Positions 5,259 to 29,200 of a stretch of 64,000 nt of DNA are shown here, piece after piece. The DNA lies in assembly GCF_964204865.1 (NCBI RefSeq), contig NC_135260.1, positions 19,034,001 through 19,098,000 on the forward strand, given 5' to 3'. The first letter of the stretch is position 1, and every line of letters begins with the position of its first letter. The notes beneath the pieces were generated by a model, which saw only the letters and a program-made list of their open reading frames with translations, was not told the origin of the DNA and made no database searches. The translations under genes and the position numbers were made by a program. This DNA comes from Styela clava. Its lineage: Eukaryota.

Positions 5259-8200
5259 GTGAGTTGGTATCTTTTTATAGTTAATATAGGTTATTGATAA
5301 AGTATAAAATTTTATTTATTTTCGATTTTTACATATTATATTTTCCTAAAAAATCTGTGGGCACAGGTATATAGCTCATTTAGCGCAAACTGTTTTGATA
5401 TTGAAACTTGAGAGATTGAGAAGGAGCTTTTAAACTTAGTAGTGGCTGCTTGGCTATTGCTTTGATTGGGATGTAAATTGAAAAGGATATGTCTAACTGA
5501 AAAGCCATCATTTCCTCTGAAACATAGTAACTAAATATATCTAACCCTATCAGAATCTCATTTGGAGGTCACATGTGAAATGGGTAAGGTAGTGAACTGG
5601 AATGAGCAGCTCACTGGTTTCAAGTTTCGGTTAATGTCAATCCTTGTTTGCATCTTACATGTCAGACATCTCATAATATAATAACTTGAAGTTTGTGGTT
5701 CACAAGTATTTGGGGTGCATATATAAACAATATAACACAGGATGGTCAAACTGTGGGCCGCGGGCCGCAAGCGGCTTGCAGAACAATTTACAGTACCAAA
5801 CCATTGGCAGATATTGTATTTATTAGCAGAACAATTTAGATTTATTCCAACTGGGAATAGTTCTTTTCCTAATCCCGATGTCCGGATTGATGTCTGTCAC
5901 TTTGCGCCACGCGATCCATTTTTTTATATGAATTCGAGGTTCCAACTTAGACGGACTTGGTTGTTTTTTGACGACAGCACTATGCATGCTCACACTACAA
6001 GTAATGAAATTTTTCAAATATAACAATTCATCATACAAAGAGTGTAGAAAAAGTGTGTCCGAAGCAAACTGAGGGGAAATGTATTTCCTTACCCACACCA
6101 ACGGCAAACCACAGTGGCTGGTGTGCTTTTTAGTAATAACCGTCATGAATGAATATACGATAATTTTAGGCGACATTACAAAACCAAACACGAGAAAAGA
6201 GACCAAAAATACCACAATATTTCTCAGGAAGCAGTTTCAAAATAAATAAAGGCTTTATATAGTTATCTTGAAAAACTGATTAGAATGCTGAACTCTCATT
6301 CTTAAATATATTTAAAGTGAGTAAACTCGCGATGTTTTGATTACTTTTGGGTTTTTTCAGACTGCGGCCTGCGAGACTTCCCAAAAGTTTTTGCTGTCCT
6401 TAGACCTCGCAACCTTGGACCACCCTGAATAACATACGGTAATATAAATAATGAATAATAGCCCAAAAAAGGGAATAACACTCCATTGACATTCCATCTG
6501 CCGGTCCAGAAGCGATCTTTTAAAAAATACTGCTTGGAATTGTTGCTCACTGGATAGTTGACAATCTTTTACTCAGGAAATTTCATTGAATTTCCATTTT
6601 CCAAAGAACAGGCTTGTAAATCATTTTGTTTAACTGAGGGTCTTTGTCATCTTTGAGGTTGCTACATAAGTTTGAACCTTGATTAGGGTTTTATACTATA
6701 GTTCATTGAAACTGAAACTGAACTGTGTTGCTTTCTTGTTGCATCTTTCTCCCTATAATGCTTTGATTGCAAATCGTTAAACTTGTTGCATACATCAAAC
6801 AATAATATTCTTCGAATTTGCATTTTGGCTCATGTGAATAAAACCAAGTCGATATGTTTTCATCTCTACATCTTCCACTGAAAAAGTTTGTATTATTACC
6901 TGGAAATCTGATTGTTGCAGAATATTCCTGACTGCCTGCCTTTTCTGTTGTAGGGCTATGATGCATTTTTTAACAATAAAACAACTGCAATATTGCTTTA
7001 TTTGGACGCTTCCAGGTAATTCTCAATGACCCTTCTGGTTGTATTCATCACTTGGAATGTTTTTGTTCTTGTCGGCAAAAATATTTATTTTTCCAATATG
7101 AATATCAATATTACTTTACGCATATGAAATATCATGATTATGGTAATAAAAATGCAATTACAATTATTCAAATTATAGTTGAGTAATAGGATTTTTCTTC
7201 TAACTTGGTAGAGTCATAATTGTGAATTACCTTAATGTAATTTGATTATTTAAACTAGTGCTTCCTTACCAAACTGTGCACTGTGGACCACTCCAAATGT
7301 TGAAATATTATCCCACATCCCATTCTCTAAAACATTACGTAATATCCACAAGAAGGACTGGAAATATTTTTCAGATGTTGAATAAAATTACTTTATGAAG
7401 AATCTGATTATACAGAAAAATGATTTTTTTAGACCTTTTGGGCCTGAATATTCTTCTTGTGACACTTGCATGTTATCTGCTGTATTTTGAATCTAACTAA
7501 TCTTCTTTTCAAATAATAGCCACGCATTAGAACAATTCAGAATCCCATTTATTTTTATATAATTTGGGATCCTTTTTGCTATGAATGGATAAGAAATCTG
7601 TTTTTTAATAAAAATCCCACCTTTATACTTAATGTCACATTGAGTTGTTAATGATAAATTGAAGTGTATCATGGTGCGACTACTTACTGAATATTGGATT
7701 GAAACAACATTCTATACCTGTATATAGGCAAGCACATGCTGAGAAGTTCAATTCGTTTGACACCACGATTGGTTGGGTTTTGCGCTCTTGTATTAAAAAT
7801 TGACATTGACAAAAGTAAGACTACCAATCGGACATTCATTCTTTTTCTTGTCATAATTCAATGCTAATATAATGTTCAATTTTCTTTCCAGTATCAGCGG
7901 AACTTTGAATATTCGAGATAAATATATAAAAATTTTCAGCTCATCTCATTGATCATAAACAGGTTGCATATGAGATATTCAGCAGCTTGATGACTGAATA
8001 GATTCAATTATTTTTCCATATTTTTATATCTTCCGGGTGTTGTGATGGTACCTAATTTGAAAGCATATTTGCATTTCCTAGTACTGTAGTTAATAGGGTA
8101 TCTTCTTATTCATTATATACTAGAATACCCGAGATTCATAGTCAATTTATAATGATGATCTAACCATATGGATCTGATGTGATAAGCATAAGCAGAAACA

Positions 8201-11200
8201 TTTTTTTTTCAAAGTTGCTGGAAGTTGACTAGTTTTGGGTTATCATCACAAATATCGTTAATACTATCCCCTATCTATCAATCTTTGAATTGGGAATGAT
8301 TTATCCACCAATAAAATTTCCGCAAGATCAAAATTGAAATAAATAATGTTGTTCCTATTTGATATTATTGTCCAAATATATAACACTGAATAAATATATC
8401 ATATACAACTATTACTAAAGAGATTAAAATTATAGTTTCTTATCACATTAATATCTCATGAATATCTATCCATTGCAAGCGTTTTTTTTGTTTTTTTGCA
8501 ACTGGTAATCATTATTTTATTCATTGAATCGTTGAATCTTTCATCCCAAAACAAAGATTCCACTTGAGCTCCTAATCAATATTAGGGGAGTGATATTAAT
8601 CATACTTACTTTCCATCTGGAAAGTTTCTGGTCTGTTTAATTTAATCAGTTGTTCCCGTCAAGCGGTTATTAATAATTATAGAGGAAGTTATCATTTAGC
8701 TTTCTATTGTTACCTCAAAATATTATATATTGAATTAAATTTATCCCACATAACAGCACTATATCAATATTTTTTGTATTTGTTGTTTATTATCATTCAC
8801 ACAACAAAACTACGATATTTTTAAATGGGTTAAATAATTTAACATTGTACGAACTCAGAAACTTGACTTGTATTTCTTGTAATTTTATAAAACTTTTTGT
8901 TATCATAATACCAAAGTATAATCAAGCCTCATGCCTTGTCCCATTTCTTCAATTAATTTTGTTAATTCACATTCTTATTGGTATATCTTCTGTTTGAATT
9001 CATTCGTTACAATAAGAGAGGTAGCATTTCGAATTTTACAGAATTCTAGTGAGGTTAGACATAAATAGAACTTGATTGGAAAAAAATCATTCTGTTATTT
9101 GGGTAGCTTGCTTGTACTATACTTGGATAAACGATTACGGTAGCTTATAATGAGGGTATAGATTTTTTATAGGAATTTTGAAATAAAAAAATGTCTAGAT
9201 ACTGATATGTATCAGTTTTTGCTTTTGTTTGAGAAATCCTTCAGTCTTCAATACTTTATATTTTCTCCATTCAGTACATTTTAGTACATTGCATAGACAT
9301 CCAATGTTATATGTATAGTATATTTTATGTTCTCTTTTGATTGTTTTTGCTCGTTATTGAAGTCTCAATATTTCCTGTTTAATTCATTCATCTGTCTGAG
9401 TTTTTATGGATTGATCACGATTCTTGATAAATTCATCTTAGTGGTGGAAGCACAACATGATTTTTCCACCCCTGGTTATTGTCTCAAATATTTTCATATA
9501 CTTCACCATTTGGCAAATTTTCATACAGACTATCGTCAGTTCTTAAATTTTCGTAAGACAGAGCAGCAGTTGGTGTCACTTCATATTCTCCTTCAGCTGT
9601 TGTGGGATCATAATTTTCATAGGTGGCGGGTTGTTCCACATGTGTACTGTTTGCTGGTTCGACATGTACTTCAAAGCTTTCTTCATCTTTACTAGTTTTT
9701 GATTGTTTTCTTTTATTGTACCTATGTTGTAAAATATCAACCTAAATCAACCACTTCACACTTGCAGTAGAAAATTAATGTTGAAGCATAAATTTTATTG
9801 CACTTGCATGGTTATTAGGATGTTTACAAGCTATGGTTTTCGGAGCCATCCCATCAAACATAAATTTTAAAAGATGTTTAATTTTGAGATACACTTAGAA
9901 AATCTTTATGACCTACTGATGGCCGTGGCTGTGCGCTATTTTCTACTGAGTAACAGGCAAGATACTCATTTTAGTTTCATATTACTACCTTTGATGTTTA
10001 TTAGACAATTTATTCAGGCCACAAAAAGATTTCCAATTTTCTTGTTAATTTAAAAAAATGTTTTTCGTCATATTCTCTTCCGAATGTGCAATTTACATGT
10101 AGAAGTGTTTATAGGTAATACATTTGATAACCTCTCAATATGAATTACCTGAACAGTACATATGCAAAAATTGCTATCAACAGCAGTGTTGCAATAGCTA
10201 CTGGTACAATGATGACCACAAGATTCCCTCCTTGTGTACCCACAGTCGATGGTCCAGTTGTCATTGCTACAAAATAATATATCTTGATTAGCACTGATAT
10301 TTCTGTCTTGGCTCGGACAAATGAAAAAACATGCTTTCAGGTTTTTGATGTACCAATTCATTTTGGTATGGAGTAGTGTACTAAGTATTAATTGAACACT
10401 ATTTACTGAAATTTTCACTTGTGTTTTGTTAAATATGAAAACACTGCTCATAATACCAGATTTGTCGGCCAGATTTCTGCTTGTTGATGATACTTCTAAT
10501 GCAGTTGAGAGTGCATCAGCTGATTGAAGATTAATAATAAGTTATTATATGGAATTTTTATTTCATATCTACACTAAATCAATTATTGGTATATATACAA
10601 AGGCTGACAGAAACTAAAAGTTGCCAGAATTTTCATACAGACTGATTCAGATGAAATGGTAGAAGAAAATAGAACAGTACAAAAGTTTTAAAATAGTTTT
10701 TTCATTGATGCATCAGTGTGAAGGGAGAAGGATATCAAAGACTATTACAACATAAATAAATAATTCTGAAAAATAAAAAAGATAATATTGGGTTTGGATT
10801 AATATTATTTGATAGGAATTTCATGCTGATTTTGGGATCATTTCAGATTTTATTATTGCTGGAACAAAAATGTATCATTGAGGATAGTAGATTGAGTTCG
10901 TTATGGCAGAGGGAAAACTGAAATATGCATTATTCATTATGTTATTCATTCAATGCATGTACTTTTGCCCCAAACATTCTATGTTCAAACTAGGCTGTGG
11001 TGACCAGTTCTGTGAATTTGTTGTAAAACACATTCAAATACTTACCTGAGCAATTTATCACTAAATACTGGATTATAAAAGATTTTGAGAGTTCTGGGAA
11101 AATCAAATTGTATTCTATTTGAGTTGTCTTATTTTTCCATGAGTGAAAAGAAGTACATGTATGGTTGTCATATGGTATCTTTGTCTTGACATTGCTGTCG

Positions 11201-14200
11201 TTACAGACAGTTGAATTAGTTGCAAACATGAGACAATAATTTTTCTTGAAATCACATTCGTATTCCTCAGTTTCTAAATAGAATTCAATTTATTAAATAT
11301 TTTCAACAGCATTCTTCGAAACATATATTCAAAATACCTCAATTATTTCTGATGTATTTTGTGAAAATATGGGTTTATCAAGATTATAACTGTGTTAATT
11401 GTAATAATATTGGCTTGGTGATAAAAGCATCTTATGCAAAAAGTTGTTAGTGATCCTCTATCCTCCCTGTTTATTACTGTCTGGATAAACAAGGTTTTAT
11501 AAAATATTACTCCTCAATTTCTAACTTAGTCTTGAATAACAAAAAGTTTGTTGCACTTGGGTATCTGAACATCAAGTAAGGTTAGCTGAATCTTGAGCAA
11601 CAGATATAATTTCTATAAGGTTAGGTGATTAATGCTTTATTTATTTAGACTAACACTTTCTTCTATATTAATTATAAAGCACAATGGCACATCTAAGAAT
11701 CCCCCATTAGACTCTATTGTGCCGCACAGTATGGGTCCACAAGAACCATTAAGGATGGTCGAATTGCGTCTACATAAAAAAAATTTTCTGTCTATTCATT
11801 GTAATAGAGCTATTACAATGTTACTTTGAATCCATTGGATTTTAATCGTTTACAATTGCACGTCAGGGAAGTATTTAAAAATACCATCCTCCACATCTAA
11901 ATATAAAATTACCTGGAAATCTTAACTTCGCACTACATTCATTTAAATCCTTAAGAAATGAGGCATTGGTCAACACTAAAACGACTGCGATATCATTTAC
12001 TTGAACAGTTTCTGGTATTATCCATTGACAATCACAGTTGGATTGCGTACTTGAACCATGTGTAATATTTTTACTTTGATCACCAAGAATGATGTTTTTT
12101 AGGCAGTCTGTGCATTGAGCTGCAACGGCATCTTGAACCATTTTTTCTAAAAAAAAAAATTATTTTTACCTTATCTGTCTACATAATTTATATAAATATC
12201 CTCCACCACTGTATGTACTTATTCGATGCATACTGGAACATTTGGTCCAAATTTGAGTTAATGGTATTGTTTGAAATCTCTATTTTACTCCCAACATCGT
12301 CAGATAGATATCTGATTATGTTTTAATTGTTTGCATAGTTCTACAAAAATTGAAACAAATTGTATTTACGGATAAAAGAACTAATAATAAACTGAAATGA
12401 TCTATTTCTGTTGATCTATTAAGAACCTGAGAACATATGCTTACCAACAAGCAATAATAGCAAAATCAGCCTCCATATATTCGATCTATTTTTGATAGAA
12501 GCTGTAGTTTCATTCATTCTGAAAAATCAATACAATATTCAGAAAGTAAGTTATAATCATGGAATATACTTTACTTGAATTCAATAGGAAAGCAACGCTT
12601 AAATATATGAATGTGAAGAGCACGCATCGGTACTGATATGGTAAGGCCTTGAACTTCAGAGTACGGAACTTGCCGAAAAGATTGATAGACAAGCTTAGCG
12701 TAAAAGGGGTTTACTTCAATTAAAGAAAAATGCAGGAGGGATAACCAGTACCCTTTTTGCGGCTTCTGCCATCTTCATGTACTGATAATTTCAAATCGAT
12801 CGGTATATTTTTCCAGTAACAACCATAACTCCAACAACGATAACAATAACATGAACCGAATATTTTGGGAGATAGTCTCACATGGAGGGGTTGCTGGTCT
12901 TTATGCCATACGCCTAACCACTTTCAAACCTGGTAAAACTTACCTATTTTTATATTTGACGTGGACTGATATGTGATGAAAAAGTTTTTAATCATACACT
13001 TTTTTTCTAAGATTATCTAATCCTGTCTTTATGGTTTAACAAAAATTATTCGCTCTTGGTTTCTACTGTCTATCAGCCTGGTTTTAAATTAGATAACTTT
13101 TCCTTTATCATTCGAATGTGCATGTCTTGTGTAGCTGCACTACAAATTATACTTGCAGGCAAAGGCCCGATATGCGCCCGACAGAGTCCCCCTACCTGTC
13201 CCCCTAACTATACTAGTTAAAAGAGTGGGATTATTCCATGGCAAATCAAATTAGGAAGGTTTTGGTTTTTCTGTACTCAACTGTACCTCTAGGTATCTTT
13301 TTGTGCAGAGCCATTTATAGGGTATTAAACATTCAAAATGGTGATTAATAACATTTAATTTGTAAGGTTCTAAATTCCAGTTTGGATGGTTCCGGCATAC
13401 AAAATATGGTAACATAAACCATAAAGTCAATAACATAGGTTCAACAATTATTCATAGTTTCTTTTCTGGGTCATCTAATTTTTAAATGACATCTAAGTTA
13501 TGATACTCATTCGCTCATTTCTTTTTAGTACTAGAGCTAATATTTTTCCTGACTTTACCCTGACCTGCTTTAATACTTTCATCTAGAATGGAGTCATTTC
13601 CTCACATTAGCTGTGATGCCAATGCTGCTATTTTTGAATATTACTATACCAGTTGAAAAAGCTAGACAATGCAATGAATAAATTGCTTGACTCATATGAC
13701 GATGTCAAATATAAAATATCCTTCATACTGGGTATTTGCCATTAACGAAGTTCAGCCATTTATTTGATTGAGTTCGTCTCATTCTGCATTGAATTCAAAA
13801 TTTTCTATGCATTGCTGTTGCATTTGCCTGACTCATAAATTTTTTTGTGCTAAATGTATTTTATTAGTGATATGCATATTTATTATAAGTACAATAATAA
13901 TGATCAATCAAAACGAAGGAACAGACACATTGTTGCTTTTCATAATAACAAAATAGGATATAAGCAATCATCACGCAGTTCTTCGCTTATATATGACAAT
14001 ATTGGCATATGTCTTATTCAGTGTGATGTTTAATAAACATTTCTACTAAATATTAATTTCAGATATTAAAATTTAAATTGATATATATGTGGAAAATATT
14101 GAATACGTCTTCGTAGATTTATGGGTGTTAACTTTCCATTACGTGTCCCGTACTGGAGTAATTCACATGTTGAAATATTTTCTGAAGTTATAACTGCCCA

Positions 14201-17200
14201 GTATGAGTATTCTACCTTGCTTCCTGCTTCCGTGCCGTTTCACAAAAATTTTTATCAAGATTTGAATAGAATAATACCTGATTTGCATATATTGATACAA
14301 ATGATTGTTGATTATATTTATACTTAATAATATTATTTGATTCAAGTATCTTCGTTTGTTTTTACATCTATCATAAACAATGCAATTAAAAGAAAAAAGA
14401 ATAAGAATAAGATGAAATATTAACTATAAATTATGTCATTGATAATATTCAATAAAAAAGTGGGTTATATCATGTTTATTGACATATAGGAAGAATCAGA
14501 GTTTCCATGAAAATTCGAAACTTCGTAGCCCATTATAAAAGGTAATATTTTGGTTCGAAAAAAACTTTCATGATGGACCTTGAGGGAAGTTCCCATAGTT
14601 ATCTAAACGATAATTAACAATAGGGCGAAATAAACTTTGCGAACTTTGTTAATTTTGATGTGAACAACATTATAATCATCTATCAATTAGATTGAAAGAC
14701 CGCCCAAGAATGGTTCAGCAGATTTTTTTCTCTAAATCTGATAAATGTGATTAAATCTATGAAAATGCTAATAATCAATCATTACTATGATCACATTATT
14801 ATAAGTGAGTATAATAACTTTTATGTCAGATTCTAGCAATAGTAAATTGATCTTAATCAATTCTATTCTGTAGTTCATTTCACTTCTGTATGTGAATATT
14901 TATACCCTCTATATAATCAGCTCTTATTACACTTGTAGCTGTTGCATATAAACAATATTGTAATTTTTGATTTTCTTTGAAGCAATTCTTTTTTGAATAT
15001 GCTTGAACTTTGTTTTCTTGATTTAATCATTTTGACTTAATGGCGATCATCCCTTTTTTGCTACTGCAGCATAAATGTCTAGATCTCCTTTATTTTTTAA
15101 AATGATGCTGTCGTCGTATTCTGGTGAATGATCAACATTTTCGCCATGTCTTACTACATTGTCATCATACATCGGAGATGAAGCAACATTATCGTCATAT
15201 TGTGGTTCACCATTGTTATCAACTTCTACATCAACTCTTCTGTTCTGGGTTTCATGTCCTTCCATTGAAGTATAATCATCGGTTTCAACGTTTTTTCTTG
15301 TTGCTTTCCCGTATATTTCATCATCATCATCCACTTCTTCCACTTTTTCTTTATTGTTATTCTGATATGGTTCATACAAATCCATATTATCTGTATTTTT
15401 ATTCAACTGATTTTGTTGTATTTTGACTTGATTTTTTTTTGTTGTATTTCTGTTAAAATAAGTATTTGTGATAATATTTACAGATTATCTTATCTTATTG
15501 GGACTTTTTTAAATTTTATGAGATAAAATTTTTGTTTGTCAGAGACTAATTCAGATTGTAGTCATATAATTCGTTCATCTAGACTTTTGATCTGTCATAT
15601 TTTTCTCATACACATTTATATATTGAGATGAGAAGCCATGGTTTGCTAAATAGCTAAATTGTCCCATTTTTTAAACCTGCTCTTGTATATTTATAAGATG
15701 CCTTTTTTACTTTAATTCAAATTGACTTGCAGTTTCCAAAGTTTTCAAATACAAATGAATTCCAGAACAAAAAATTCAGAGGGTTTGAAGTGATAAAGAT
15801 GAGATTTTAATGCACTATTGACGATCAATAATAATATAATAATAACAGAAGTTAAGACTATGATATAATGTTACGGCCTATTGCGATAGCTCACCTTCTT
15901 AAGAACAATCCTATGGCCAGTGCCAGCAAAAACACTCCTCCGATTATAATTCCAATGATCATGATCATGTTTGTTGGGACACCGGTATTTCCTGACGAAG
16001 ATCCTGAATCATCAAAATTTGGTGGGTCTGTAACTAAAAAAAATTTAAATATATATTGTTGCTTCTTGATTACCGGTATATTTTGATATCATTGACGATG
16101 CATTATGCATCATGTTTGTAATTATTATTTCAAGAACCAAATGGTTCACTGCTGTGATTACACCTTGGGATATCCTGATCCTATGTTTATATATATATAT
16201 ATTTATTATTATAGTGAATCAGAACATATTTAGCTATTAAACAATTTTCTATATATCTGTGCTGAGCTAAAAGAATACCTGTATTTTTTGTAGTTGCTGC
16301 CTCAATTATTTTTTTTGTTTCAGCGGAAGTTGTCATCTGAGTTGTTGTTATATCACCTGTGATGATGCATTTCTTAGATTAAACAGAACTTACATAATTA
16401 ATCTTGTGACAATTGATTATACAATTAAGTAATCCTGCATTACCATATAACTTTTTGGAAATCATAAGTCTTCAGATTAATTTGACAAAGCGTTGTTACT
16501 TGTCAGGTTTAGGATCTCCTAAACCAATGATTCCCAAAGTGGGCGATATCGCCCCCCGGTGGGCGATAACGCTACAGAGGGGGCGAAAAAGTCGAAGGGG
16601 GCGATTTCTAAAAACCTGTTTTTGTTCGGCGCATCGTGCACTTGATTACTGTAATCTGCTTGCTTTCGTATGTTTGAATCACGTAGGCGATTATCACAAG
16701 CGAAAGGATTGCGGGACTCGTCTTCGCAGTAAGATACGGTCGTAAATAAACTGGAACTTCTGGGGAGACAAAGTGATCATTGACTTATTTTATTTATATT
16801 TAAATTTCCGAAAAACAACTAAAAACTAACGAATGTAATTCAAAAACGCCAAAATAAGGTAATTTTCACGACCACGTCTGAAAATCTGTCTGAGTGAGAA
16901 ATATGTCTGAGTGAGAAATATGAGCGGATGCAAAAGTGGGCATTGTTACGTTTATTTTTGCATCTTGCTGAATGGCCAATGTCACGACGTAAACAAGGAA
17001 GTCTATGCCCGGGGAAACATCCAAACGGCGGTTTTGGTGATGAATTAATTTTATTTACAATCTACGCTCGAGGAGTAAATTCATTTTTTTTATATAACAG
17101 AACTTATCGTGTGGCACGTTTAGACAAAATTTTATTATGGCCCTAAAATTTTATTAAACAGCTTCTCGTTTAACGAGCCTACAATCAATTATAATTAGAC

Positions 17201-20200
17201 AATAGGAAACACACGGAAAAGTTGATGCTGAGTGCAGGGGTTCAATAGCGCACTAAATATCAGAATATATTGCAATGCAATAAGGAAATAAAATTCATAT
17301 TCTATTCGAGGGATTCATCACTGCTCAATTTTTGTAAGAGTGTATCTTCTTAAAGAAAATCTTGATCAAAATTTGACAAACCATGCGAAAATATTCATTT
17401 CGATGTTTGGAAGTACATATGTGTGCAAACAAATATTTTCGAAAATGAACATTACAAAGAACAAGCTAGAACTAGGATTAGTGATGTCCATTTAGAAAAT
17501 CTTCTAATCTTGGCGTCGTAAAGCTATCAAGCGTGATGCAGCTACAAGACAGTGTCACATTAAATGTCATTGTAATAATTTTTTAATAAGACGACTGAGT
17601 TGAGTTCACAAATTGTCGCGTTTTTTTCCCGCTGTTCCGTTTTTAACTTTCAAAAAATATATGCGACCCGCAAAAGATTAGCAACCCTAAATGTAAAATA
17701 AGGTGAATTTAGGGAGTTAAATGCTATAAGGTAAGATTACACGGTGGTTTTTGCGGAGGTTGAACCCTAGATTCTTTTATTTCCGACCGCTAATATGATG
17801 AGGAGTTTTCAGCTGTGCTACTATTGCTATCAAAACAACGAAATCGTCTTTCCATCAGTAAACAGGGTCATTTTTGATATTATAAAAAACTCGCTGAAGA
17901 TCACCAAGCTCATTCATCTCATTAAAAAATACTATAAACTATGATTTGTCTCGTCATTTTTTTTGCAGTGCCGGGGGGCGATGAACTTGTATAAACTACT
18001 GTAGGGGGGCGATGATACAAAAAGTTTGGGAACCACTGTCCTAAACCACACAAAGAAATTCATTTCAATATTTTATTTCTTATATTATAAACAGCATATT
18101 TCAAATCCAGGCACATATGCATGTTTCCTCAAACTTCTTTTCTATGGACCTCAAAATGATTTTGCATTGCTTGAATTCTACAATGTCTCTCTGTTCTTAC
18201 ATTCTAAGCAGTGTCTTCAAATTATTTTCTAGTTGGATAAAAACAGCAAAATAAAGCATATGTGGTCACATTTTTAAAATAGATGAAATTAAAACATGCA
18301 TTTCAATCATATACTAAAAATTTCATTTTCTTATTTCATTGTCAAATTACTTGATATACATTCTACAGCCACAAGGAGTCAGCAAAAAAACGCTAAATGC
18401 TTTGCAGTATTGCTTTGTATGTGTCTCTTGAATTTTTAGAAGAATTTCATTCAGCAAACTTTATTATAAAACTTACTTGTTGTCGTTGGTGGTATACATG
18501 GTGTAACTAGATATTGTATAACAAATGATTTCGTGTATGGTGCGAAATTCTTTGCATTATACTTTATTTTGTATGGGGATCCTCCTGCTTTATTCCAATA
18601 TGTAGGTGAGCTGCAGTTTATTGTTTTGTTTCCAGCAAATATTTCTATTTGTTTGTTTTTGCATAGTGTGGATGATTCAGTCATAAATACCGAACACTGG
18701 TTTTCTACAAAGTCACATCTGTGCTTATCGCTACCTTTAAAACAAAATTCAACGAAAGGCCTTTAAACAATGAAAAACTAGTTTAGAAGAGAAATGAGGT
18801 ACTAATACATTATCTAGAATTTACTGTACAGTGGTTTTGTGTTTGAATCAGGAAAGCAACGGACAAAAATTGTGTGTGATATATAGAAACTGTTAAATCT
18901 GAAATTGTGTCTACTGGGGTTTTGTATGTGTAAAGTTTTCAGGTTTGAAATCATGTTTGGATGTACTGTTTGATATTGTAACTGGCTGAGAAATTTATTC
19001 ATACCAAATGAAACTAATTCATCATATTCAAATATAGCTTTGTTTTGACAAATTTTCTATTAATACCTGGTAACCTGATTTCTCCAGAGCAATCTATGCT
19101 TCCAGAACCTGTTGTCATTGGCAGGGAGATATTCTGAAGTAATAGTACAATTGCGTTGTTGTTATCTGTGGCAAATTTTACTGGTATTGTCCACTCGCAG
19201 TTGCAACTGTGTCCATTGCTCGGACCGTAGCTGATATTTCTGCTTTCTTTTCCAAGAATAATTTTTGGACAATCTGAACAAAACGCCGCTTTGCTCATAC
19301 TGAATTGATTTCCTGGAAAAAGATTTTTAATGTTCATTGTAAATTATCTGGATGGTAATTTTAATGCCGCGTCACTATGGTGAGGGAAAGTTGTGTTGTA
19401 ATTTGAGACCATAAAATATTCATAATCAGTTTGTATCTTGGACGATGGTCAAATGTAGGTACAATATAACACGGTAGCTTCATAAAAACCAACGAATTAT
19501 TGCATGCATAAAGATTCCTATGAAATTAATAAGCATTTTTGGGACCGTGCTTATGCTTATTAGTGTTGATGTTTTTTCTTGCTGAATTGGAATAGTGCTG
19601 GAATCGAATTACGGTAGTTATTGATCCCAATTGTCATTTAAATGAGTCTTTTTATGTACCTCGTCCTCACCAAAAACATTTGTCCATGCTTAGTTTAATT
19701 ACTTTTATGCTGTCAATTTGTATTTTATTTGTAAAATTATGAAGATAATATAAATATGATTATAGACATACCTGCTAAATAAATAATCAAGATGGGGATC
19801 TTGCAATAAATGGTGTCAGAAAACATCTTGCATCCACTTCTTCTGTAAATTGCATAAACGTGACTACATATCATAAAGAGCTTGCATTTGAAATTTTATT
19901 GAATAAATGAAAATTCAGTTTCACAAGGATGGAAAGACTTGTTTCTTAAATTACCTAAGGCAAACTTGAGTCTCGTGGAGATATTTTCACACAAATAATT
20001 AACAAGGGATTGATAGATTGAGGTGATACCTAAAAAACTTTATTAGCCTATGGGATTTTTTTGACTATTTTTCGAATTCAAACCGTTAGTTTATCTTCAG
20101 TTTAATGACTTAGTTTTAAACTTTCATACTGTCTATTGCTACTCTATGAATGCATCAATAATATTAAATATCAGCATAAAATTTGCTTTTGTATCTTGGA

Positions 20201-23200
20201 TTATTTTCTAAGGTAAAAGATTGTATTGTGCTACACTATAATGTAAGTTTGGCATACTATTTATTTATTTTCATTTATTTTTCGCTTATGCTATGCAGAA
20301 ATAAGTGGTTTGATTCCTGTTGAGAATATTTATGTGTACACGACCACTGAATACCTGTTGTAGTGTTTCGTCGTTTTGTTACCTATTTCTTGAGTATATT
20401 TATACATCTTAAATATTCAACCAGTTATTTTCACACACAACCTGAACAATCTATATGGCCTACAAGCTATGAAGCAGTTGCAATATTTGTATAAATTCAA
20501 CTTGTCAATTCAGCCATGTTTTTTTTATCTGACAATACTAGTAGAATGTAACAAATTGTTGAGAAAATTTTGCTCCAGCTTGCCGCTCCTGATGATTTCC
20601 TTGTCTGTCTCACTTCTTTTGAATGTTCCAGATTATGTTATGCAATTTTTTTTAGATTTGTATATTATATTCTTCTATGGTTTGTGTATTTTTCTTATTC
20701 ACAAAGCCACCTACTCAATGTTTAAGGAAGTTGGTAAAGCGTTGAAACATTGTAATTTGTGTGAATATATATGAAATGCAGTACACACAAAAAACATTAC
20801 TAATTTGTATTTAATAGGAATTCAAATATTCTTGATAGATATGAGTTACGAAATTGATTCTTTGCTAATAAATAGCTTTTGTGGATCAAGTCAGTTGATT
20901 GGCATCTTCACTGCAATTTTTTGTTGAACCCCATTGTATTTGTGTAGCTTATTTTCATCATGCTACGCAGGCTAGGTATGAAGCAGTTCTCTACCATTTG
21001 GCCCATTTTCAGTGCCAAAAGAAATCTTAGGCCGACAAAACCAATGATAAAATGTTACCCAAAATAAATTTTTGTTATTAATGAAAACTGAAAAAAAGTT
21101 GCCAAACTAAGGGGTCGGCTTATACATGATAACTCTGATCGCACTCGAACAAGTGACATTATGTTAACTTAATTCCAACAGCTACAACTCAATTCTCATG
21201 GTAAGAGCTTACAATTTGTAGGGTCGGCTTATATGCAAATTTTTAGTAACGTTTTATGGCTGTTTTTGTGGGGTCAGCTTATATGTGAGGATATACAGAA
21301 AATATATATTTTACTATGATGTATTTATTAATGTTTGTGTTAAGTTTATACTGTGAGAAATCAATAAATTCTGTCATCATGTAGTTGACAAATAATAAGG
21401 AAGTGCCACAGTTATATAAAGTATATTCAGTTGTCAATGGCTTGATTATATTTATTTTCATTATGAAACAAAAGAGCAAAATACTCAATCAATTGTCCTC
21501 AACAGCGTTATGCTCATAGATTTTAAAATACATAAACATTTTTTCGCATACTTGTTGCATACTATGACTAATGATGTTGCCATAATATGTGGGCTTTTAT
21601 GTTTATAATATCTCTGCATGTTGTTCTATTGTTTTGCCTTGTTTTGTCAATTATATTGCTCATATCTTGACACATATGTAAAAATTTTTTGTTTTAAAAT
21701 TCCATGTTAGTACAATGTCAACATCTCTCACATTTGGTTGAAAATTACGCTGCAGTCACGTTTTAAAGTTTTTAGTACCGTAAATCACGTTTTTGTAATT
21801 TCCAGATATGGTATTAATGAGTGCTCTAAACCCTTACATAGTAGGAATCGAATACTCCTTGCAAAACATCATATGTATGGCTCTTAAGGATGTGTTTTCG
21901 ACAACGCCTGAAGCACACCCCTATATATTTTTTTACACATTCATCACCATAAGTTACAATTTATATGCACGATACTTAAAATCTAGATGCATCTTGAGTT
22001 GACTCTAAATTATCGGTGCTCCAGAAGTGTGTGTACCAATATGGAGGTAACTAATTTTGTTTGCCTACTGCACATCAAGTTGTGTGAAGGGACTGAAACC
22101 TATGCACAGGGGGGTATATTCACTTGTCTAACACAGACAGTCCCCGAACTCGTAATAGAACTGAAATAAGGAATATCGAAATAAAATTATGGCCCAACCC
22201 CAGTAGTGGGATTCAGCCGGTCCGTCCGGAACCGTCTCACCGAATTTTATGAGATCAGCGAACCGGTTGGCATTACTGAAAAAAACATGACTTCTTGTAA
22301 CAGAAACGGCTGAAAAATATGACATTTGTGTGATGGAAATTTGAGTCCCATCACTGCCTAACCCTAACCTGGTACACACTCTTCGGGAGTACCCAATTAT
22401 CTATATTTCTGATCACCTATTTGCATAGAACTCCCGTGAACCTGAAGGTTAGGTTACTTTACTTGAAGTACAATTTCATGTGCTGTGCTTTCAGTTCTGG
22501 AGTGAATACAGTACGAGGTGGTTAATTATGATATTTCATACATCACCAAATACAAATATACTAGTAAATTTATATATTCTAATGTAGTAAAATGGGTAGG
22601 TTATGATAAATCATAATCATAATAAGCATAGTCAGTTTCCTTGTATCAGTGTCTATTCCCCTGGAGATCTATTAAGAGTAAATTATATCAATTTAAACAT
22701 TGTTCTATAATAGTGTTTGTATTTTGCGCAATTCTTGATACCTATTTATGACTGCGTTTTGACGATAATCCTATATCATATCTTAATTAGTTGGTTACAA
22801 CCATATACAAGTCTGTGTTATCTCTGAGATTTTCATACTGTCCATTGTCCGTCAAATTTTCATATTGAACGTCATTTCTTAGGTTTTCATATTGCATCAC
22901 AGATCTTGGAACTTCATATTCAACTTCATCATTTGTAGGTGTGTAGTTTTCATAACAACCCTGATCTTTGTCCAAAGTTTCAGAGCCATGATGTGAAGGG
23001 TCTTGATGTTGTACATTTGTTAGCTCTAATTTACTTAAATTTTCATCCTTTCTTCTGCATCTGTAAATTGTAAATTTCGTTGTACTATCAACTGTTTTTG
23101 GCTTGATCTAGTCAGGTATATCGTTAGATTCATTGAATAAACAGTTATAATCAACCAAGTAAGTCCTGTCTTAATACCAAATAAGTGGCACCAAAATTAC

Positions 23201-26200
23201 ATAATTGCTTGCCATCTCTTTCTGAACATTTAATATGATCACAATTCACTATCAGCTTTCGAGTCTTTTTAAATCTGACTTACCTTCGTATGATGCAACC
23301 GATTAGAAGACAGAGAAGGATTAGCCCAAGCACAGATGGAGCTATTACTATAAACAGCTGAATTTCAAAAGATTGTGAGACATGAATAGCCATTGTTGCA
23401 TTTGTATAGTTCAGTATCTCTGCAAATGAATTCATATTACAACTTTAAATATTGTCATCTGCCACAGCCTGTATTGGTTGATACTAATATATGAAATAAT
23501 AAACGAACAGTATTAAATCTGTTTGCCAGTACAATCAATTATCTAATATAGCCGATTTGTGTAGGAAAAAAACAATTCAATACTCATAACCTGTTCTTAT
23601 TACAATTCAAGTTTCAGAGATTTCTTCCTTAAACCCTACTTAAACCCTTTTACATCGCTGAATAGATGAGATAGGTTGCAGCTGTTAGATAAAAAAAATT
23701 GTAGATAGAGATGATCAAAATTTCCCAATCACCAGGGTTATACCACAAAGCTAAACAGCATTGTTTTAATAGCTGGGACTTACCATTGGTGGTTAATGTG
23801 ATGCTATTTTCAATGTTTTCAGTCAGTGTATTATTAATTTCTAAAGCTGAATTGGTTTTTGTCTGTTCTTCTGTATGTTGCTTAGTTGTCTCAAAAAAAT
23901 TCTCAGGAGAAATACCAATATAGCTCCCTAATTAAATAGAAAAAACTAATGAGTTTTTATAAAATTTAATCCGAGCTTTCTAAACCCCCCCCTAAATCCC
24001 ATCTTGGAAACATTAAGTAATTTTTATTATTTAAATTTATTAGACTGCAAGCGAGATGTTGAATAACATAACTTAATTTTGTAACTCCATATTCGCTTAA
24101 TTTGAATAGTGTTATTGTTTGAAGATTTTAGTCCCTTCGAAAATTGAGATTGTGATTTTAGAAACAACTGAACAAATCATGTTTTTTATGAAAATCTCAT
24201 GAAAATTTGGTCGAAAAATAAAGCATTAATTTGATCACAAAGTAAGTTTTGCTATCATTTCTGTTTGATGGTTGCTCTTAGATTTTAGGTGAAATTCTAG
24301 TACAGCAAACTGTTTTGTCATTACATTTCTAGTAGTCATAAGCTTTATCTGACTAACCTGTACTTGTTATTTTGACATCATTTGTAGTTTGTGTTTGTTT
24401 GCAGTAGAAAGGAATATAATTAATCTTGAATCTCCCTTCTCTCTTATTTTCTTGGGTGAATCTGATTTCTGGATTTTCTGTCCACTGCATGATAGATTTT
24501 GATCTACATTCCTGATCCACTTGCAGTTCATTTGCATTACACGCTGTGAATTTCGTCACATAAATAATGCAATCTCCTGAAGTATATTTGCATGAACTCT
24601 TCAGTCCTGTAAAATACATAAACATGAATTGACAAAATGTAATGTGTGAGGTAGAATCCTGCCACACGCAACAAGACTAAATTTTATATAATGTAGGTGT
24701 ATACTGCGATTTATACAATTTGATATATTAGGTGGTCTCGCAAAGAGGTTCAAAACTCTTGCCCCCATATTTTTGTTGTAAAAATTTTTGTTTTGTTCCA
24801 ATCAGAACAAGTCTTTATATAAACTCCACTTAGATATAATTATAAGGAGTATATGCTTCATTTCAGCTTTGCCTTTTTTGTTTGATGTTCTATGTCCTAC
24901 CATGATACGGTAATGGATATGAACCATTCACTGAGGTCCACACAAGGTCTGTAATTTTCAATGCCAGCCCAATTACCGGTAATCTAAATTGCCAATTACA
25001 TAGTTACCTGGTAGTGTCAAGTTAGCTTTACAACCATAGATATTTTCCATTTTGGCATAGTCAAAAGTGAAAGCAACTGCATAATTGTCAGAAACAATAT
25101 CAGATGAAATGTTCCAAGTACATGTATAATCTTCTTCTGGAGCAAGAAGAGTTTTTCTACTGTATATGTTATTTAGTAATATATTCTCACATTTTTCTCC
25201 ATATATAGTTTTGAACAGAATTGCTGTAGAAAAACATAAAATCTAATATTCAATCTTATTGTGTTAGGTAACATCAATGCTAATTCACTCTGTATACTAT
25301 CAATGAATTCAAATACATTTCATTTACAAGTAGAACTTATTCAATATTTGAACAAAAATGCAGATAAAACAGACATAAATAAATAATTTTAACTCACCTA
25401 TTGAAAGTAAAGTATTGATAAAGCTACATGGTGACATTTTGTTTTTGCTGTGCTACTGACAAAATGATGGTATAATGGTTGATGACATGCAACCGTATAT
25501 TTTATGGTAGAATTTAGTCCCATTTTCCTTAAATGACGCATTGTTTATTTACTTATTAAGAAGGACAAAAAAAGTGGTGTGATTATTTATTTTACGTAAA
25601 TAGAAATCGACTCGCACCTGCTTAAACTTATGCAAATTACAATTCATCATAACTTCCGCGTCGTTTCAGAGAAATTAAGTGGAAAGTTTTAAGACAATGA
25701 GTAATTATGAAACAGGAATCGCTCATAAATGTATATTGGTAGATAATATATCAAAACATCATACCTCCTAATGATATTTATTTTTACAAATTCTGAATAT
25801 AACAGTATATTTAATCCAGTCACAATTTAACACAAATCATTAATATAAAGTATAACTGTTTATGCTCTAGTTTTCTTCAAATTTAGGACAGGAAAGGCAA
25901 AGAGGGGCAAAGGGAATTATTATTTATTTCTCAAATTTTTGGTGTTTGATAGTCATATTATATAGAATCTTAATATCAATATATATTATATATTCATTGA
26001 ATCTTATATTAGACATTGAGCATCGACATTGAATTAATTTAAATATTTTATTATCCATAAACGTACAAAATAAGCAAAGATTACATAGATTTAAAAAATG
26101 GTAGAGACAGCATAAGTTTAAGCGTGTTGATCTTATGTTATTCCATCCATGTTGGCATCTTCAATTGTTCTTATCATTATGTGTAGAAAATTGAAGTGTG

Positions 26201-29200
26201 TGTACCAATATGGCCTCATTTTGTTCGCCTACTTTACATCAAGTTGTGTAAAAGGACTGAAATCTATGATCAGAGCCAGAGGGTATATTTGCTTGGCTAA
26301 TACAGACAGTCCCGAACTTGTAATAGAACTAAAATAAAGAAAATCGGAATAAAATTATGGCCTATCCCCAACCCGGTACACACACTATAGAAGTACCGAA
26401 AATTGGGTACATTTTATTAGATTTTGACTTTTCAACCTCAGTATCTCTCCCACTCTCCCAGTGCTTTCTCCCATTATTCAAACCTTGTATGTACTCTGGA
26501 ATTTTAAACATTTTTCAAATCAAGTATTTTGCTCAATTCGTTTATACCTTTCCAAGGTGAGAATTTACCCGACATTATGGTAGAAAATTTTCACATTCAA
26601 ATTTAGGACTTCTTTTTTTCAGACACAAAGGTCTATTTTACTTTGATGGAAGATTTAGACCAGTACCATTGGAACAAACTTTCATCGGCGTAAAAACAAT
26701 GAATCGAATGCAACAAGCACAAGATATGAATAATATTTGTTATGAAAAGGCTGCAAGAAATGTAGAAAGAGGACATCAGGTTTTGTGGAATATTTGCATA
26801 TTTTATTTTGACATAGTTACGTAAAGGAAGTCGTTTAAAATGACGACACAATGGAATTTCTGTTTGATCATATTACTATATTCGTGATTAGTTGATACAT
26901 CATTGTTTCAGCTTAATAACCTATGCAAATTTCCTGTTTGCAGCCTCAATTCAACCGCAAGAACTAAATTAATCGAATTGTTCATATTGACTAAACTATT
27001 TTGATATTTATTTGCTTTAAATCATATTAGCTTCCTTTTATCCTCCATCTTGTGACGCTATTGACCAGTTCTTGATAACCGTGAAAATTTCCATATTTCA
27101 ATAGTGACCCAGAATGCGCAATATAAAGTGCTTAAAAACATTGAAAATTTTTATGCTATTTTAAACTTTAATATTAACTTCCAGTAACAGGATAAAACAG
27201 GGGTGGTCAAGGTTTTTGGATCAGGGGCCACAAATTTTGCCCACCTAGACTGGTGGGCCATTTGAGTGTGATGTAAAAAGTTCATTTCGTGAAGAATATT
27301 TACAGTATCACAAAAGCAAAAGTGGAAAACAAAAAGCCTCGTGCCCAAACTAAATTTATTAGCAATTTCAACAAATTCCTTGAGCTATTTTTAGGTAAAA
27401 CATCATTTGTTTTTAGTTTGTTTGTGGCATCATCAGGCAGGCCAGATTGAACTATCTGACGTGCCGAAATACAGCCCGTGGGATGCCCATGTCAGGGATT
27501 AAAGTTTTTCCCTTTTACTAGATTTGTAATATGTGCCATTCATTCATTTTTTCTATGTTGTTAATTCTGTGTCATTCTTATCGATGTATTACTAACTAGA
27601 GATACTATGCCATAGTTTAGTAGCATTCTAAACTTTTTATTTTTAGGTTTTGGTTTTTGTCCATGCTCGAAATGCTACAGTTAAAACTGCTCAGGCTTTA
27701 TTGGAAATAGCAAGAAACAATGGAGAGACAGGATTGTTTGATTGTAGACAAATGTCGGGATTTGGGCAAGCGGAAAAACAGGTTTATATTAGAATATTTA
27801 TGTTTGGATATTGACTCCTATTTCTCCTGTCATTCTTAAAATTCTACTATAGAACTAGACTAGGCGAAAAAAAATTGAAATGGATCCTGAAATATTTTAA
27901 ATTGATTACGAGATATTTATTTCTATTTCAGACGTACCTGATTGTTGTGCAATATAATGATAACATAAGCTGAATTTCATTTTCCTGAATCCCGAATTCG
28001 CTCCAAATTTACTGAAAATGACGATTTTTATCAGATCTGAGTTCCTAGAAATAGAACTTATAAGCCAAAACCTTTAAATTTTCCTAATTTACAGTGTTAT
28101 CAAATTTACAAATGATGTATCGTACTTGCGTTGGTGCCCATTTTTTGTTCTGTGTCTCCTGGCTTGGCCTATGGTTAGGTATAAGCGTCCAACAGCGCAA
28201 TTTCGATACATTATATCATGTCACACTTAAAATTGTTGCGCTTTTTAGATGTCTAATTCAAGAAATCGTGAACTTCGTGAATTATTTGCATCTGGATTTG
28301 GAATTCATCATGCAGGAATGTTGAGACCCGACAGAAATTTGGTGGAAAGAAATTTTAGTCAAGTTAGTGATTAGTATTATCTTTTCATTCCAATTGAAAA
28401 ATATGAATTGAGGATTTCAGAATTTTTTGCTGAATGATATAAACTTGCTATCTCTTATAAGTATGGAAATACTGTTTTTGGAAGGTCTTATTTATCTAGT
28501 TGAATTTAGCCTACCTAATTCATCGCAACTTACAATGGATGAATATAGTATATTAAGATTTCTAACTTGTATAATTATAAGTATAAGTTTATTTCGACTC
28601 CATAATGGGAAGGTATTGATAAAAGATGTAGTACGTGTTCGATCACCCCATGTAATGCCGAAACATTTACAGTAGTACGATAAACACTATACCGTTGCTT
28701 CCCAACTTTTCAGTGTTATGATTTGCCTGCAAGTTATAGATTGATTCCTCTAAACCAGGGGTCTCAAACTCAATTTACTCAAGGGCCGCTGGGGCAGAGT
28801 CTAGGTGAGTCCGGGCCGCATCAGGTTTTACACAATAAAAGCTCAGCAACTCGTTTGGCTCCCTGATATATCGTATACTCCTCACGTCTTGTCATTTAAT
28901 GACGTTTTAAATTGTATTCCTTGTTCACTGCAACTTTCTCTATGCAGATGAGACATGTCGGGGTGCCAGTATGCTCAACAAAGAAATATTGCATTTCCCA
29001 CTTTTCTAGCAATTGTCTGTGCTGTTGCGCTGATGTTTCAACCAAGCATTTAGCCGATGGACAGTGATGTTTCATCACATGGAAAACATTGTTACAATGT
29101 ATTAATATAAATCTAAGCGTTAGTGATTGTGACATCAAAAATCATGGAACACTGTTTTAATTAACTTATTTCAGGCGGTTCCACGTTCGAATATCAGGCC

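Follow-up and report, generated by a model that had tools for sequence, protein, structure and literature searches.

Three neighbouring genes of the ascidian Styela clava raise the question of whether the extracellular and cytoplasmic parts of a receptor family have been exchanged between its members. They lie in a window of 64,000 nucleotides (assembly GCF_964204865.1, contig NC_135260.1, positions 19,034,001 to 19,098,000), which is AT-rich (about 33% GC); all positions below are those of this window unless another contig or locus is named. The genes, called here A, B and C, are encoded on the minus strand between 9.4 and 25.5 kb. An earlier description made from the letters of the window (the sequence-only reading) saw in them a paired-receptor signature, in which A would combine the ectodomain type of B with the tail type of C. 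In the present study, the three genes were placed in their family, and this exon-shuffling signature among three neighbours vanishes once the family of about 45 genes is considered. The expressed orphan tail of B is the one real oddity in an otherwise ordinary, undescribed, lineage-specific receptor family.

The models of A, B and C were built by hand from the sequence, and all introns are GT-AG. A and C were analysed exon by exon, and the full-length form of B is a database protein. The exon plan common to the three genes consists of a signal exon, two phase-1 ectodomain exons, a transmembrane (TM) exon and one tail exon, with intron phases of 1,1,1,2. In each of them, and also in the paralogs of a tandem array described below, the TM exon ends at phase 2 in AG, two bases of an Arg codon whose third base opens the tail exon. 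The family protein is a small type I membrane protein. A signal peptide precedes a Cys-rich ectodomain of ~155 amino acids, which is encoded by the two phase-1 exons; then come a Ser/Thr stalk, a TM helix without charge and an acidic tail with several tyrosine motifs in one exon. The sequence-only reading had this plan right and missed the sixth exon of B, a stalk exon of 78 nt; its statement that the tail is a single exon after a phase-2 intron in all three genes agrees with the exon models and, for B, with spliced contigs.

These contigs came from four public runs and were placed on positions 14400-19950. The RNA label of the runs was a guess, and we have taken them as RNA because the contigs are spliced, which fits RNA. 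They join position 15448 to 15900, about 16033 to 16326, 16355 to 18477 and about 18722-18734 to 19065, and thereby verify the B junction at the phase-2 Arg codon; they also extend the 3' untranslated region of B to at least 14400. In the database, B is XP_077974358.1 (P0001 in our lists), 'uncharacterized protein LOC144429975 [Styela clava]', and its sequence agrees with the modelled exons, including the stalk exon. The NCBI model has about 23 extra codons upstream of Met 19826, partly from a further 5' exon. Taken together, the spliced contigs and the NCBI model show that B is expressed and that its unusual tail exon is truly joined to the TM exon.

Two smaller observations concern the same gene. 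At the junction of B exons 4 and 5 (15895-15903 and 15449), two runs have spliced contigs with 3-4 differences inside a stretch of 9 bases, all synonymous (Leu-Arg-Arg is retained), and the flanks differ by ~2%. Allelic haplotypes could explain this, as could a close copy that escaped notice or an artefact of assembly. In intron 3 of B, contig depth over 16446-18119 rises up to ~2000, with many partial contigs of 90-95% identity in 4/4 runs, which suggests expressed high-copy repeats or transposon pieces in this 2.1-kb intron.

To place the three genes in their genome, a profile of the three exon-2 peptides was searched against it and gave 47 matches. Thirty-eight of these lie on the plus strand of the contig that holds the window and form a single tandem array at 5.53-5.79 Mb, 13.5 Mb away from it. 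Four more are found at 6.16-6.19 Mb, one is on C13, and four weak ones (E-value, E, 0.002 to 1.8) are on other contigs. A, B and C belong to an S. clava family of at least 45 paralogs, most of them in this array. The array was read over 200 kb (L031-L050, C14:5525001-5725000), and beyond 5.725 Mb, as well as in the cluster at 6.16-6.19 Mb, the genes were read in loci of 3.2 kb only. The ectodomain exons of the array match B best (E 1e-25 to 1e-32), and most array-gene tails match C (down to E 1e-9) and, more weakly, A. Since array ectodomains are B-like and array tails are C-like, a B-like ectodomain with a C-like tail is the standard architecture of the family.

The tail shared by A and C, called class 1, was found on at least 16 readable array genes and on the C13 copy, and it is the commonest tail of the family. 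Its elements in an iterated profile are YENY, a 15-aa GYEVP unit that is present in one to about 25 copies, YEVV and YQYEN; A scores 74 bits and C 85 bits against this profile, values reached by 0/500 shuffles. The longest case, at L040:1169-2425 (C14:5616169-5617425), is one tail exon, open over 419 codons, in which GYEV[PI]xPVDKKN[EK]QS is repeated in tandem about 25 times, and the neighbours of this gene have 1-5 copies of the unit, so the tails of the family change length fast. A second tail, class 2 (..IYGTS..IYDTT..LYAVV..SIYAVVNKDKK), is carried by nine genes that lie side by side where the array has its 5' end, for example at L032:8506-8829. The two classes are unrelated by hhalign (P 0.69), and the ectodomain exons of class-1 and class-2 genes are 67.5% and 74% identical between classes, the same as within them. 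The idea that class 2 is a cassette common to other receptor families was rejected, as this tail was found nowhere outside the present family. When monophyly of the class-2 genes was imposed on the two ectodomain exons, the approximately unbiased (AU) test gave p 0.11 and 0.09, which disfavours monophyly and still does not reject it; tail shuffling at the level of the family is therefore only suggested.

Word-index protein searches returned 20 proteins with B as the query and 32 with a 19-row family alignment, all of them S. clava proteins annotated as 'uncharacterized', and no Pfam domain is recorded in any of the 32 annotated family proteins. The family is apparently restricted to Styela clava, no other having been found by word searches, which can miss distant relatives. 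We believe that this adds an uncharacterised receptor family, apparently specific to Styela, whose ectodomain is of no Pfam type and whose tails fall into at least two types and perhaps three.

Against this background the tail of B stands apart. It is 133 amino acids long (against 73-100), acidic with a net charge of -15, and its 8 tyrosines lie in the motifs LYEPY, EIYGKA, DDYTSM, three copies of YDD[NS] and DIYAAV. Searched in its own genome, it matched only itself and no donor, and an exhaustive search of 1.84 billion representative proteins again gave only itself (P0001) and no relative. In position, in phase and in its split Arg codon the exon agrees with every tail of the family, and between the TM exon of B and gene A there is no relic of a class-1 or class-2 tail exon. 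Tandem Repeats Finder detected no tandem DNA repeats in the three tail exons.

A faint likeness to the family tails was nevertheless repeatable. Full-length BLASTP of B is collinear from the ectodomain into the tail, where IQQNQ aligns with IQHQQ, YEPY with YENY and VDNNGEPQY with VDKKNEQQY. In Smith-Waterman alignments with cheap gap extension, the score of the B tail against class-1 tails was reached by 2-7/400 and by 3-6/500 shuffles, the latter result holding even with shuffling confined to blocks of 30 amino acids, and against class-2 tails by about 10/500. The two segments picked out by hhalign are 15 amino acids against the class-1 stretch VPIPVDNKNEQQYEI and 13 amino acids against the C-terminal class-2 stretch EDESSSIYAVVNK, and neither is significant. 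The claim that the B tail is unrelated to those of A and C holds insofar as no hidden Markov model (HMM) or hhalign score against the two tail classes is significant, and is to be qualified by the weak collinear motif likeness to these classes (p about 0.006-0.02).

We consider it rather probable that the B tail diverged in place from an ancestral family exon. This reading draws on the unchanged position and phase, the lack of a relic exon and of a donor, the collinear motif likeness and the fluid nature of family tails. A, B and C would then be three old and divergent family members, derived from one member that seeded the window cluster. In such a history A would have the standard family architecture and be no chimera, and C would have retained its class-1 tail while its ectodomain diverged fastest, followed by that of A and then that of B. 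B itself would have retained a near-consensus ectodomain, and only its tail exon would have changed beyond recognition, with place and phase unchanged. The change would have proceeded by rapid divergence of a disordered tail of short motifs, with insertions and motif turnover.

Several points weigh against this reading. The B tail scored -4.9 bits against the class-1 HMM and -2.4 bits against the class-2 HMM, values reached by 315 and 155 of 500 shuffles; hhalign gave P 0.18 for class 1 and P 0.085 for class 2, over only 13-15 columns. By Smith-Waterman, the B tail was not significantly similar to the tails of A and C themselves. The gap-tolerant p of about 0.01 is marginal, and the acidic, N/K-rich composition and the post-hoc choice of motifs could inflate it. 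Support by RNA and annotation exists for the model of B only, the models of A and C being hand-built. The trees reported below are poorly resolved, with A, B and C on long branches, so that 'not rejected' is weak support for any history; and what is said below of signalling derives from sequence motifs.

Assignment of the B tail to class 2 was also tried, on account of IYAAV..KKG beside IYAVV..KDKK and EIYG beside AIYG. On the class-2 values just given (-2.4 bits, P 0.085), homology of this kind was rejected; the likeness is at the level of motifs.

The strongest competitor is a true replacement, in which B would have lost a class-1-like tail exon and filled the phase-2 position with a newly recruited coding exon, taken from a vanished donor or from sequence that did not code before, with a new output on an ordinary ectodomain as the result. 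Its appeal is easily seen: the tail lacks a relative both in the genome and among the 1.84 billion proteins, HMM and hhalign find no significant likeness to either class, and the tail is longer, has YDD[NS] in place of YEN and lacks all four of the YxN sites present in A and C. The family-wide phase-2 boundary would make such an exchange neutral to the reading frame, and a second, unrelated tail class in the family means that tails have turned over at least once. We nevertheless regard replacement as possible rather than likely, since neither donor nor relic of the old exon was found, the weak collinear likeness to both family tail classes is repeatable, and the tail resembles those of the family in its juxtamembrane start, in its acidic Tyr-rich composition and in the IYA[AV]V..K with which it ends. 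The sequence-only reading had offered tail replacement in B as one explanation. Its orphan tail keeps that proposal alive, but the motif likeness and the absence of a relic exon fit divergence in place about equally.

The identities in the window are where the idea of a swap began. Aligned within the window, A and B are 41% identical in exon 2, 35% in exon 3 and 14% in the tail, and A and C are 20%, 19% and 44% identical. Homology of the A and C tails was rightly recognised (42-44% identity; tblastn E 4.6e-9), and so was the lack of the CxDC and CxC pattern in C, as the CxDC / CxCxW and QYLV motifs are present in A and B only. That A and B are the closest pair of ectodomains is true within the window, but in the family each of them is nearer to array paralogs. 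In the family alignment, A and B share 39% (exon 2) and 31% (exon 3), A and C 22% in both exons, and B and C 23% and 25%. A is on average 44% and 43% identical to class-1 array genes, its best single matches being array genes at 50% and 49%; it has a divergent ectodomain of the usual family kind and no special likeness to B. The corresponding means of B are 60% and 48%, with best single matches of 67% (L004) in exon 2 and 52% (L017) in exon 3. C is 19-30% identical to everything in both exons and 21% identical to the array in exon 2. Its tail is 44% identical to an array tail (P0004), as close as to the tail of A.

Separate trees of ectodomain exons and of tail exons were built to seek discordance. 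For exon 2 as for exon 3, IQ-TREE with 38 paralogs gave a star-like tree, with A, B and C as long branches off a polytomy, and no discordance is supported. Under a constraint joining A and B, the AU test gave p 0.57 for exon 2, where the constrained tree was 3 log-likelihood (lnL) units better than the free one, and p 0.45 for exon 3. Joining A, B and C gave p 0.68 for exon 3, with a gain of 8 lnL units over the free tree. These better likelihoods may be due in part to long-branch attraction. In the tree of class-1 tails, A pairs with C (91/83) against the array. As three taxa have one unrooted tree, A, B and C alone cannot show topological discordance, and the ectodomain and tail trees are compatible with a plain ((A,B),C) history. 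In the profile comparison of the B tail with those of A and C, homology was not shown, and the trees fit one history.

The same figures bear on a further alternative, in which B arrived later and independently from the array, was not the sister of A, and had its TM and tail end rebuilt at or after the move, so that the cluster would be polyphyletic. B is indeed closer to the array in exon 2 (60%, up to 67%) than A (44%) or C (21%), and tree searches without constraint left A, B and C apart. We find this unlikely, because the trees constrained to A+B (exon 2) and to A+B+C (exon 3) have the higher likelihood, an effect that long-branch attraction could cause, and because B is well outside the identity range within the array (65-75%). 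Least credible of all is the proposal of the sequence-only reading that exon shuffling or unequal crossing-over joined the ectodomain of a B-like gene to the tail of a C-like gene, with A as the resulting chimera: the similarity pattern in the window is as described, every tail exon follows a phase-2 intron and the genes are adjacent in the same orientation, but both ectodomain exons of A are nearer to those of the array than to those of B, its 'C-type' tail is the commonest tail of the family, the C tail is equally close to an array tail and to the A tail, and no supported tree conflict emerges with 38 paralogs.

With regard to function, the tails look like phosphotyrosine docking platforms for SH2 proteins, judging from their motifs. 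In a regular-expression scan, the tails of A and C contain four YxN sites and three to four Yxx[ILV] sites. The scan for ITIMs (immunoreceptor tyrosine-based inhibitory motifs; [SIVL]xYxx[IVL]) found two sites in A, together with one spacing that fits the consensus of the immunoreceptor tyrosine-based activation motif (ITAM), one site and no ITAM in C, and none in B. The ITIM/ITAM-consensus matches are not conserved between A and C, and class-2 tails contain SIYAVV. The B tail is without Tyr sites of the A/C type, except for the terminal YAAV, and it is plausible that B signals through SH2 partners other than those of A and C. One ectodomain type with several predicted outputs is supported at the level of the family. 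The claim that related binding modules are wired to different outputs thus finds its support in the array, where class-1 and class-2 ectodomains are alike, and does not extend to A, B and C, whose ectodomains are far diverged.

The ectodomain itself gave nothing significant in Pfam, either exon by exon or in full-length proteins (P0001, P0009, P0012), with no CUB, Ig or Sushi match. An AlphaFold2 model of B based on the 19-row family alignment has a mean predicted local distance difference test (pLDDT) score of 49, and of 53-74 in the ectodomain; the predicted protein has an all-beta ectodomain and a single TM helix, with disorder in both the stalk and the tail. Foldseek with this low-confidence model found no match in the PDB at E <= 0.001. 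Its weak rows include jelly-roll capsids, C1r CUB, neuropilin CUB and spermadhesin (prob up to 0.63; CUB rows E 0.04-0.1). The predicted all-beta fold, the C..CxW..I-type start and these CUB rows are a hint that the ectodomain may be 'CUB-like', a CUB/jelly-roll beta sandwich. The absence of a Pfam CUB match, by exon or full-length, the poor model and the lack of a significant structural match set it apart from known CUB domains.

Among known systems, the Fester co-receptors (FcoR) of Botryllus schlosseri come nearest. These are clustered type I receptors in a member of the same ascidian family as Styela, with an Ig-Sushi-Ig-Ig ectodomain and tails that combine ITIM, hemITAM and two 'core' tyrosine motifs (PMC12582321). 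FcoR tails differ between close relatives and can be swapped through alleles and alternative splicing, and the core-2 motif [A/D]VYxxV is found only in pairs, 29-33 residues apart, at the C-terminal end (PMC12582321). The Styela family is similar in being a clustered multigene family of type I membrane proteins with tyrosine-motif tails in a styelid ascidian. Its class-2 tails, too, bear a C-terminal pair of YxVV motifs, with a spacing of exactly 33 residues; B has the distal motif only (DIYAAV), and A and C have none of the pair. In contrast to FcoR, the Styela ectodomain is one Cys-rich module of ~155 amino acids without a Pfam Ig or Sushi match. The likeness is one of motif grammar only, drawn from the published motif definition, and S. 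clava is a solitary species set beside allorecognition co-receptors of Botryllus.

Vertebrate paired receptors (KIR, Ly49, LILR, SIRP, PILR; NITR and NILT of fish) are a second system with tandem, fast-evolving genes, in which closely similar ectodomains have alternative cytoplasmic ends. The likeness exists at the level of the array, where ectodomains that carry different tails are no less alike (the 67.5%/74% between classes given above) than those with the same tail. Classical activating paired receptors have a short tail and a charged TM residue that recruits ITAM adaptors. In the Styela family, unlike these, the tail is long and Tyr-rich in every member, and no charge is present in the TM helix of A, of B or of C. 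The ectodomains of A, B and C are 21-39% identical, too divergent for a shared ligand to be assumed by default.

Tunicates are the closest invertebrate relatives of vertebrates, and clustered tunicate receptors with tyrosine-motif tails bear on the origin of activating and inhibitory immune signalling. It is tempting, although we think it rather doubtful, to see in the Styela family a non-Ig counterpart of Botryllus FF/FcoR, built from one fast-evolving module and at least 3 interchangeable tail cassettes (class 1, class 2 and B). If this analogy were true, the B tail would be a recently born or replaced module with a class-1-like middle and a class-2-like C-terminal motif, and the phase-2 tail exon would be a real plug-in point in the evolution of immune or self/non-self signalling, and this in an ascidian that is solitary. 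The link of the array class-2 tails to the Botryllus allorecognition co-receptors is by motif grammar.

Within the family, some further gene arrangements were observed. Four short copies at array positions 104122, 115354, 132575 and 143209 (L041, L042, L044, L045) alternate with full genes. Of exon 2 they retain only the first ~24 codons, and behind these come a stalk/TM exon of normal form and a class-1 tail exon, so that these copies either carry a tail without an ectodomain or are duplicates in decay. In the lone C13 paralog (L017:1432-2103, C13:18933746-18934417), the intron between exons 2 and 3, ~87 nt long, is open and in frame, giving a read-through frame of 224 codons; this paralog carries a class-1 tail and is annotated as P0005, LOC120337975. 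For P0002 (LOC120347104, 624 aa; 45 and 49 kb, L035-L036), the NCBI model fuses two adjacent array genes in the order ectodomain-TM, then ectodomain-TM-class-2 tail, and the tail exon of the first gene itself was not found there. P0002 is either a read-through model or a real tandem-domain product. The features of the window are collected in the table.

Table. Features of the receptor cluster and its surroundings, in window positions.
Feature	Position	Strand	Remarks
Gene A exon 1	12445..12517	-	Start codon 12517-12515; signal peptide; ends in phase 1; GT donor 12444-12443
Gene A exon 2	11913..12146	-	First ectodomain half, CxDC..CxCxW; phase 1-1; exon-2 profile E 2e-26
Gene A exon 3	11046..11273	-	Second ectodomain half, ..IQYLV..C; phase 1-1; exon-3 profile E 6e-27
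Gene A exon 4	10149..10266	-	Stalk and uncharged TM helix; ends in AG (phase 2)
Gene A exon 5	9484..9721	-	Class-1 tail: YENY, EYEV, 2x YENL, YENI; stop 9486-9484
Gene B signal-peptide exon	19772..19826	-	Met at 19826
Gene B exon 2	19067..19312	-	Ectodomain first half; in P0001; contig joint near 19065
Gene B exon 3	18477..18734	-	Ectodomain second half; contig joint at 18477
Gene B extra stalk exon	16279..16356	-	78 nt, Thr-rich; phase 1-1; contig joints; in P0001
Gene B stalk/TM exon	15895..16033	-	Ends in AG (phase 2); contigs and P0001
Gene B tail exon, coding part	15047..15449	-	Orphan acidic tail, 8 Tyr
Gene C exon 1	25398..25437	-	Start codon 25437-25435; signal peptide extends into exon 2
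Gene C exon 2	25008..25223	-	Very divergent ectodomain first half; exon-2 profile E 3e-15
Gene C exon 3	24358..24606	-	Divergent ectodomain second half; exon-3 profile E 2.5e-16
Gene C stalk/TM exon	23284..23419	-	Ends in AG (phase 2)
Gene C tail exon	22787..23060	-	Class-1: YENY, EYEV, 3x YENL, LYMVV
Fragment D	6706..6969	-	Fourth, fragmentary family copy; exon-3 profile positions 2-38, E 2e-11
Host-gene upstream exons	2654..5259	+	DEAD-box helicase core of ASCC3/Brr2-type helicase; open reading frame (ORF) list and Pfam
Host-gene downstream exons	26561..34048	+	Same helicase, including Sec63 Brl domain; ORF list and Pfam

Exon 2 of C retains one Cys at each of two Cys pairs. Fragment D is one open frame, in which the end of an exon 2 (..IRFPG) and the first half of an exon 3 are separated by a short stretch that resembles an intron and is in frame. 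The rest of its gene was not found, and it is probably a pseudogene remnant, by eye most like gene A. On the opposite strand, the Pfam DEAD domain was matched by the ORFs 2654-2872 (E 2e-7) and 4263-4481 (E 4e-7), and Sec63 by 33737-34048 (E 3e-11). From these matches and the ORF list, the receptor cluster lies antisense within an intron of ~21 kb of an ASCC3/Brr2-type helicase gene.

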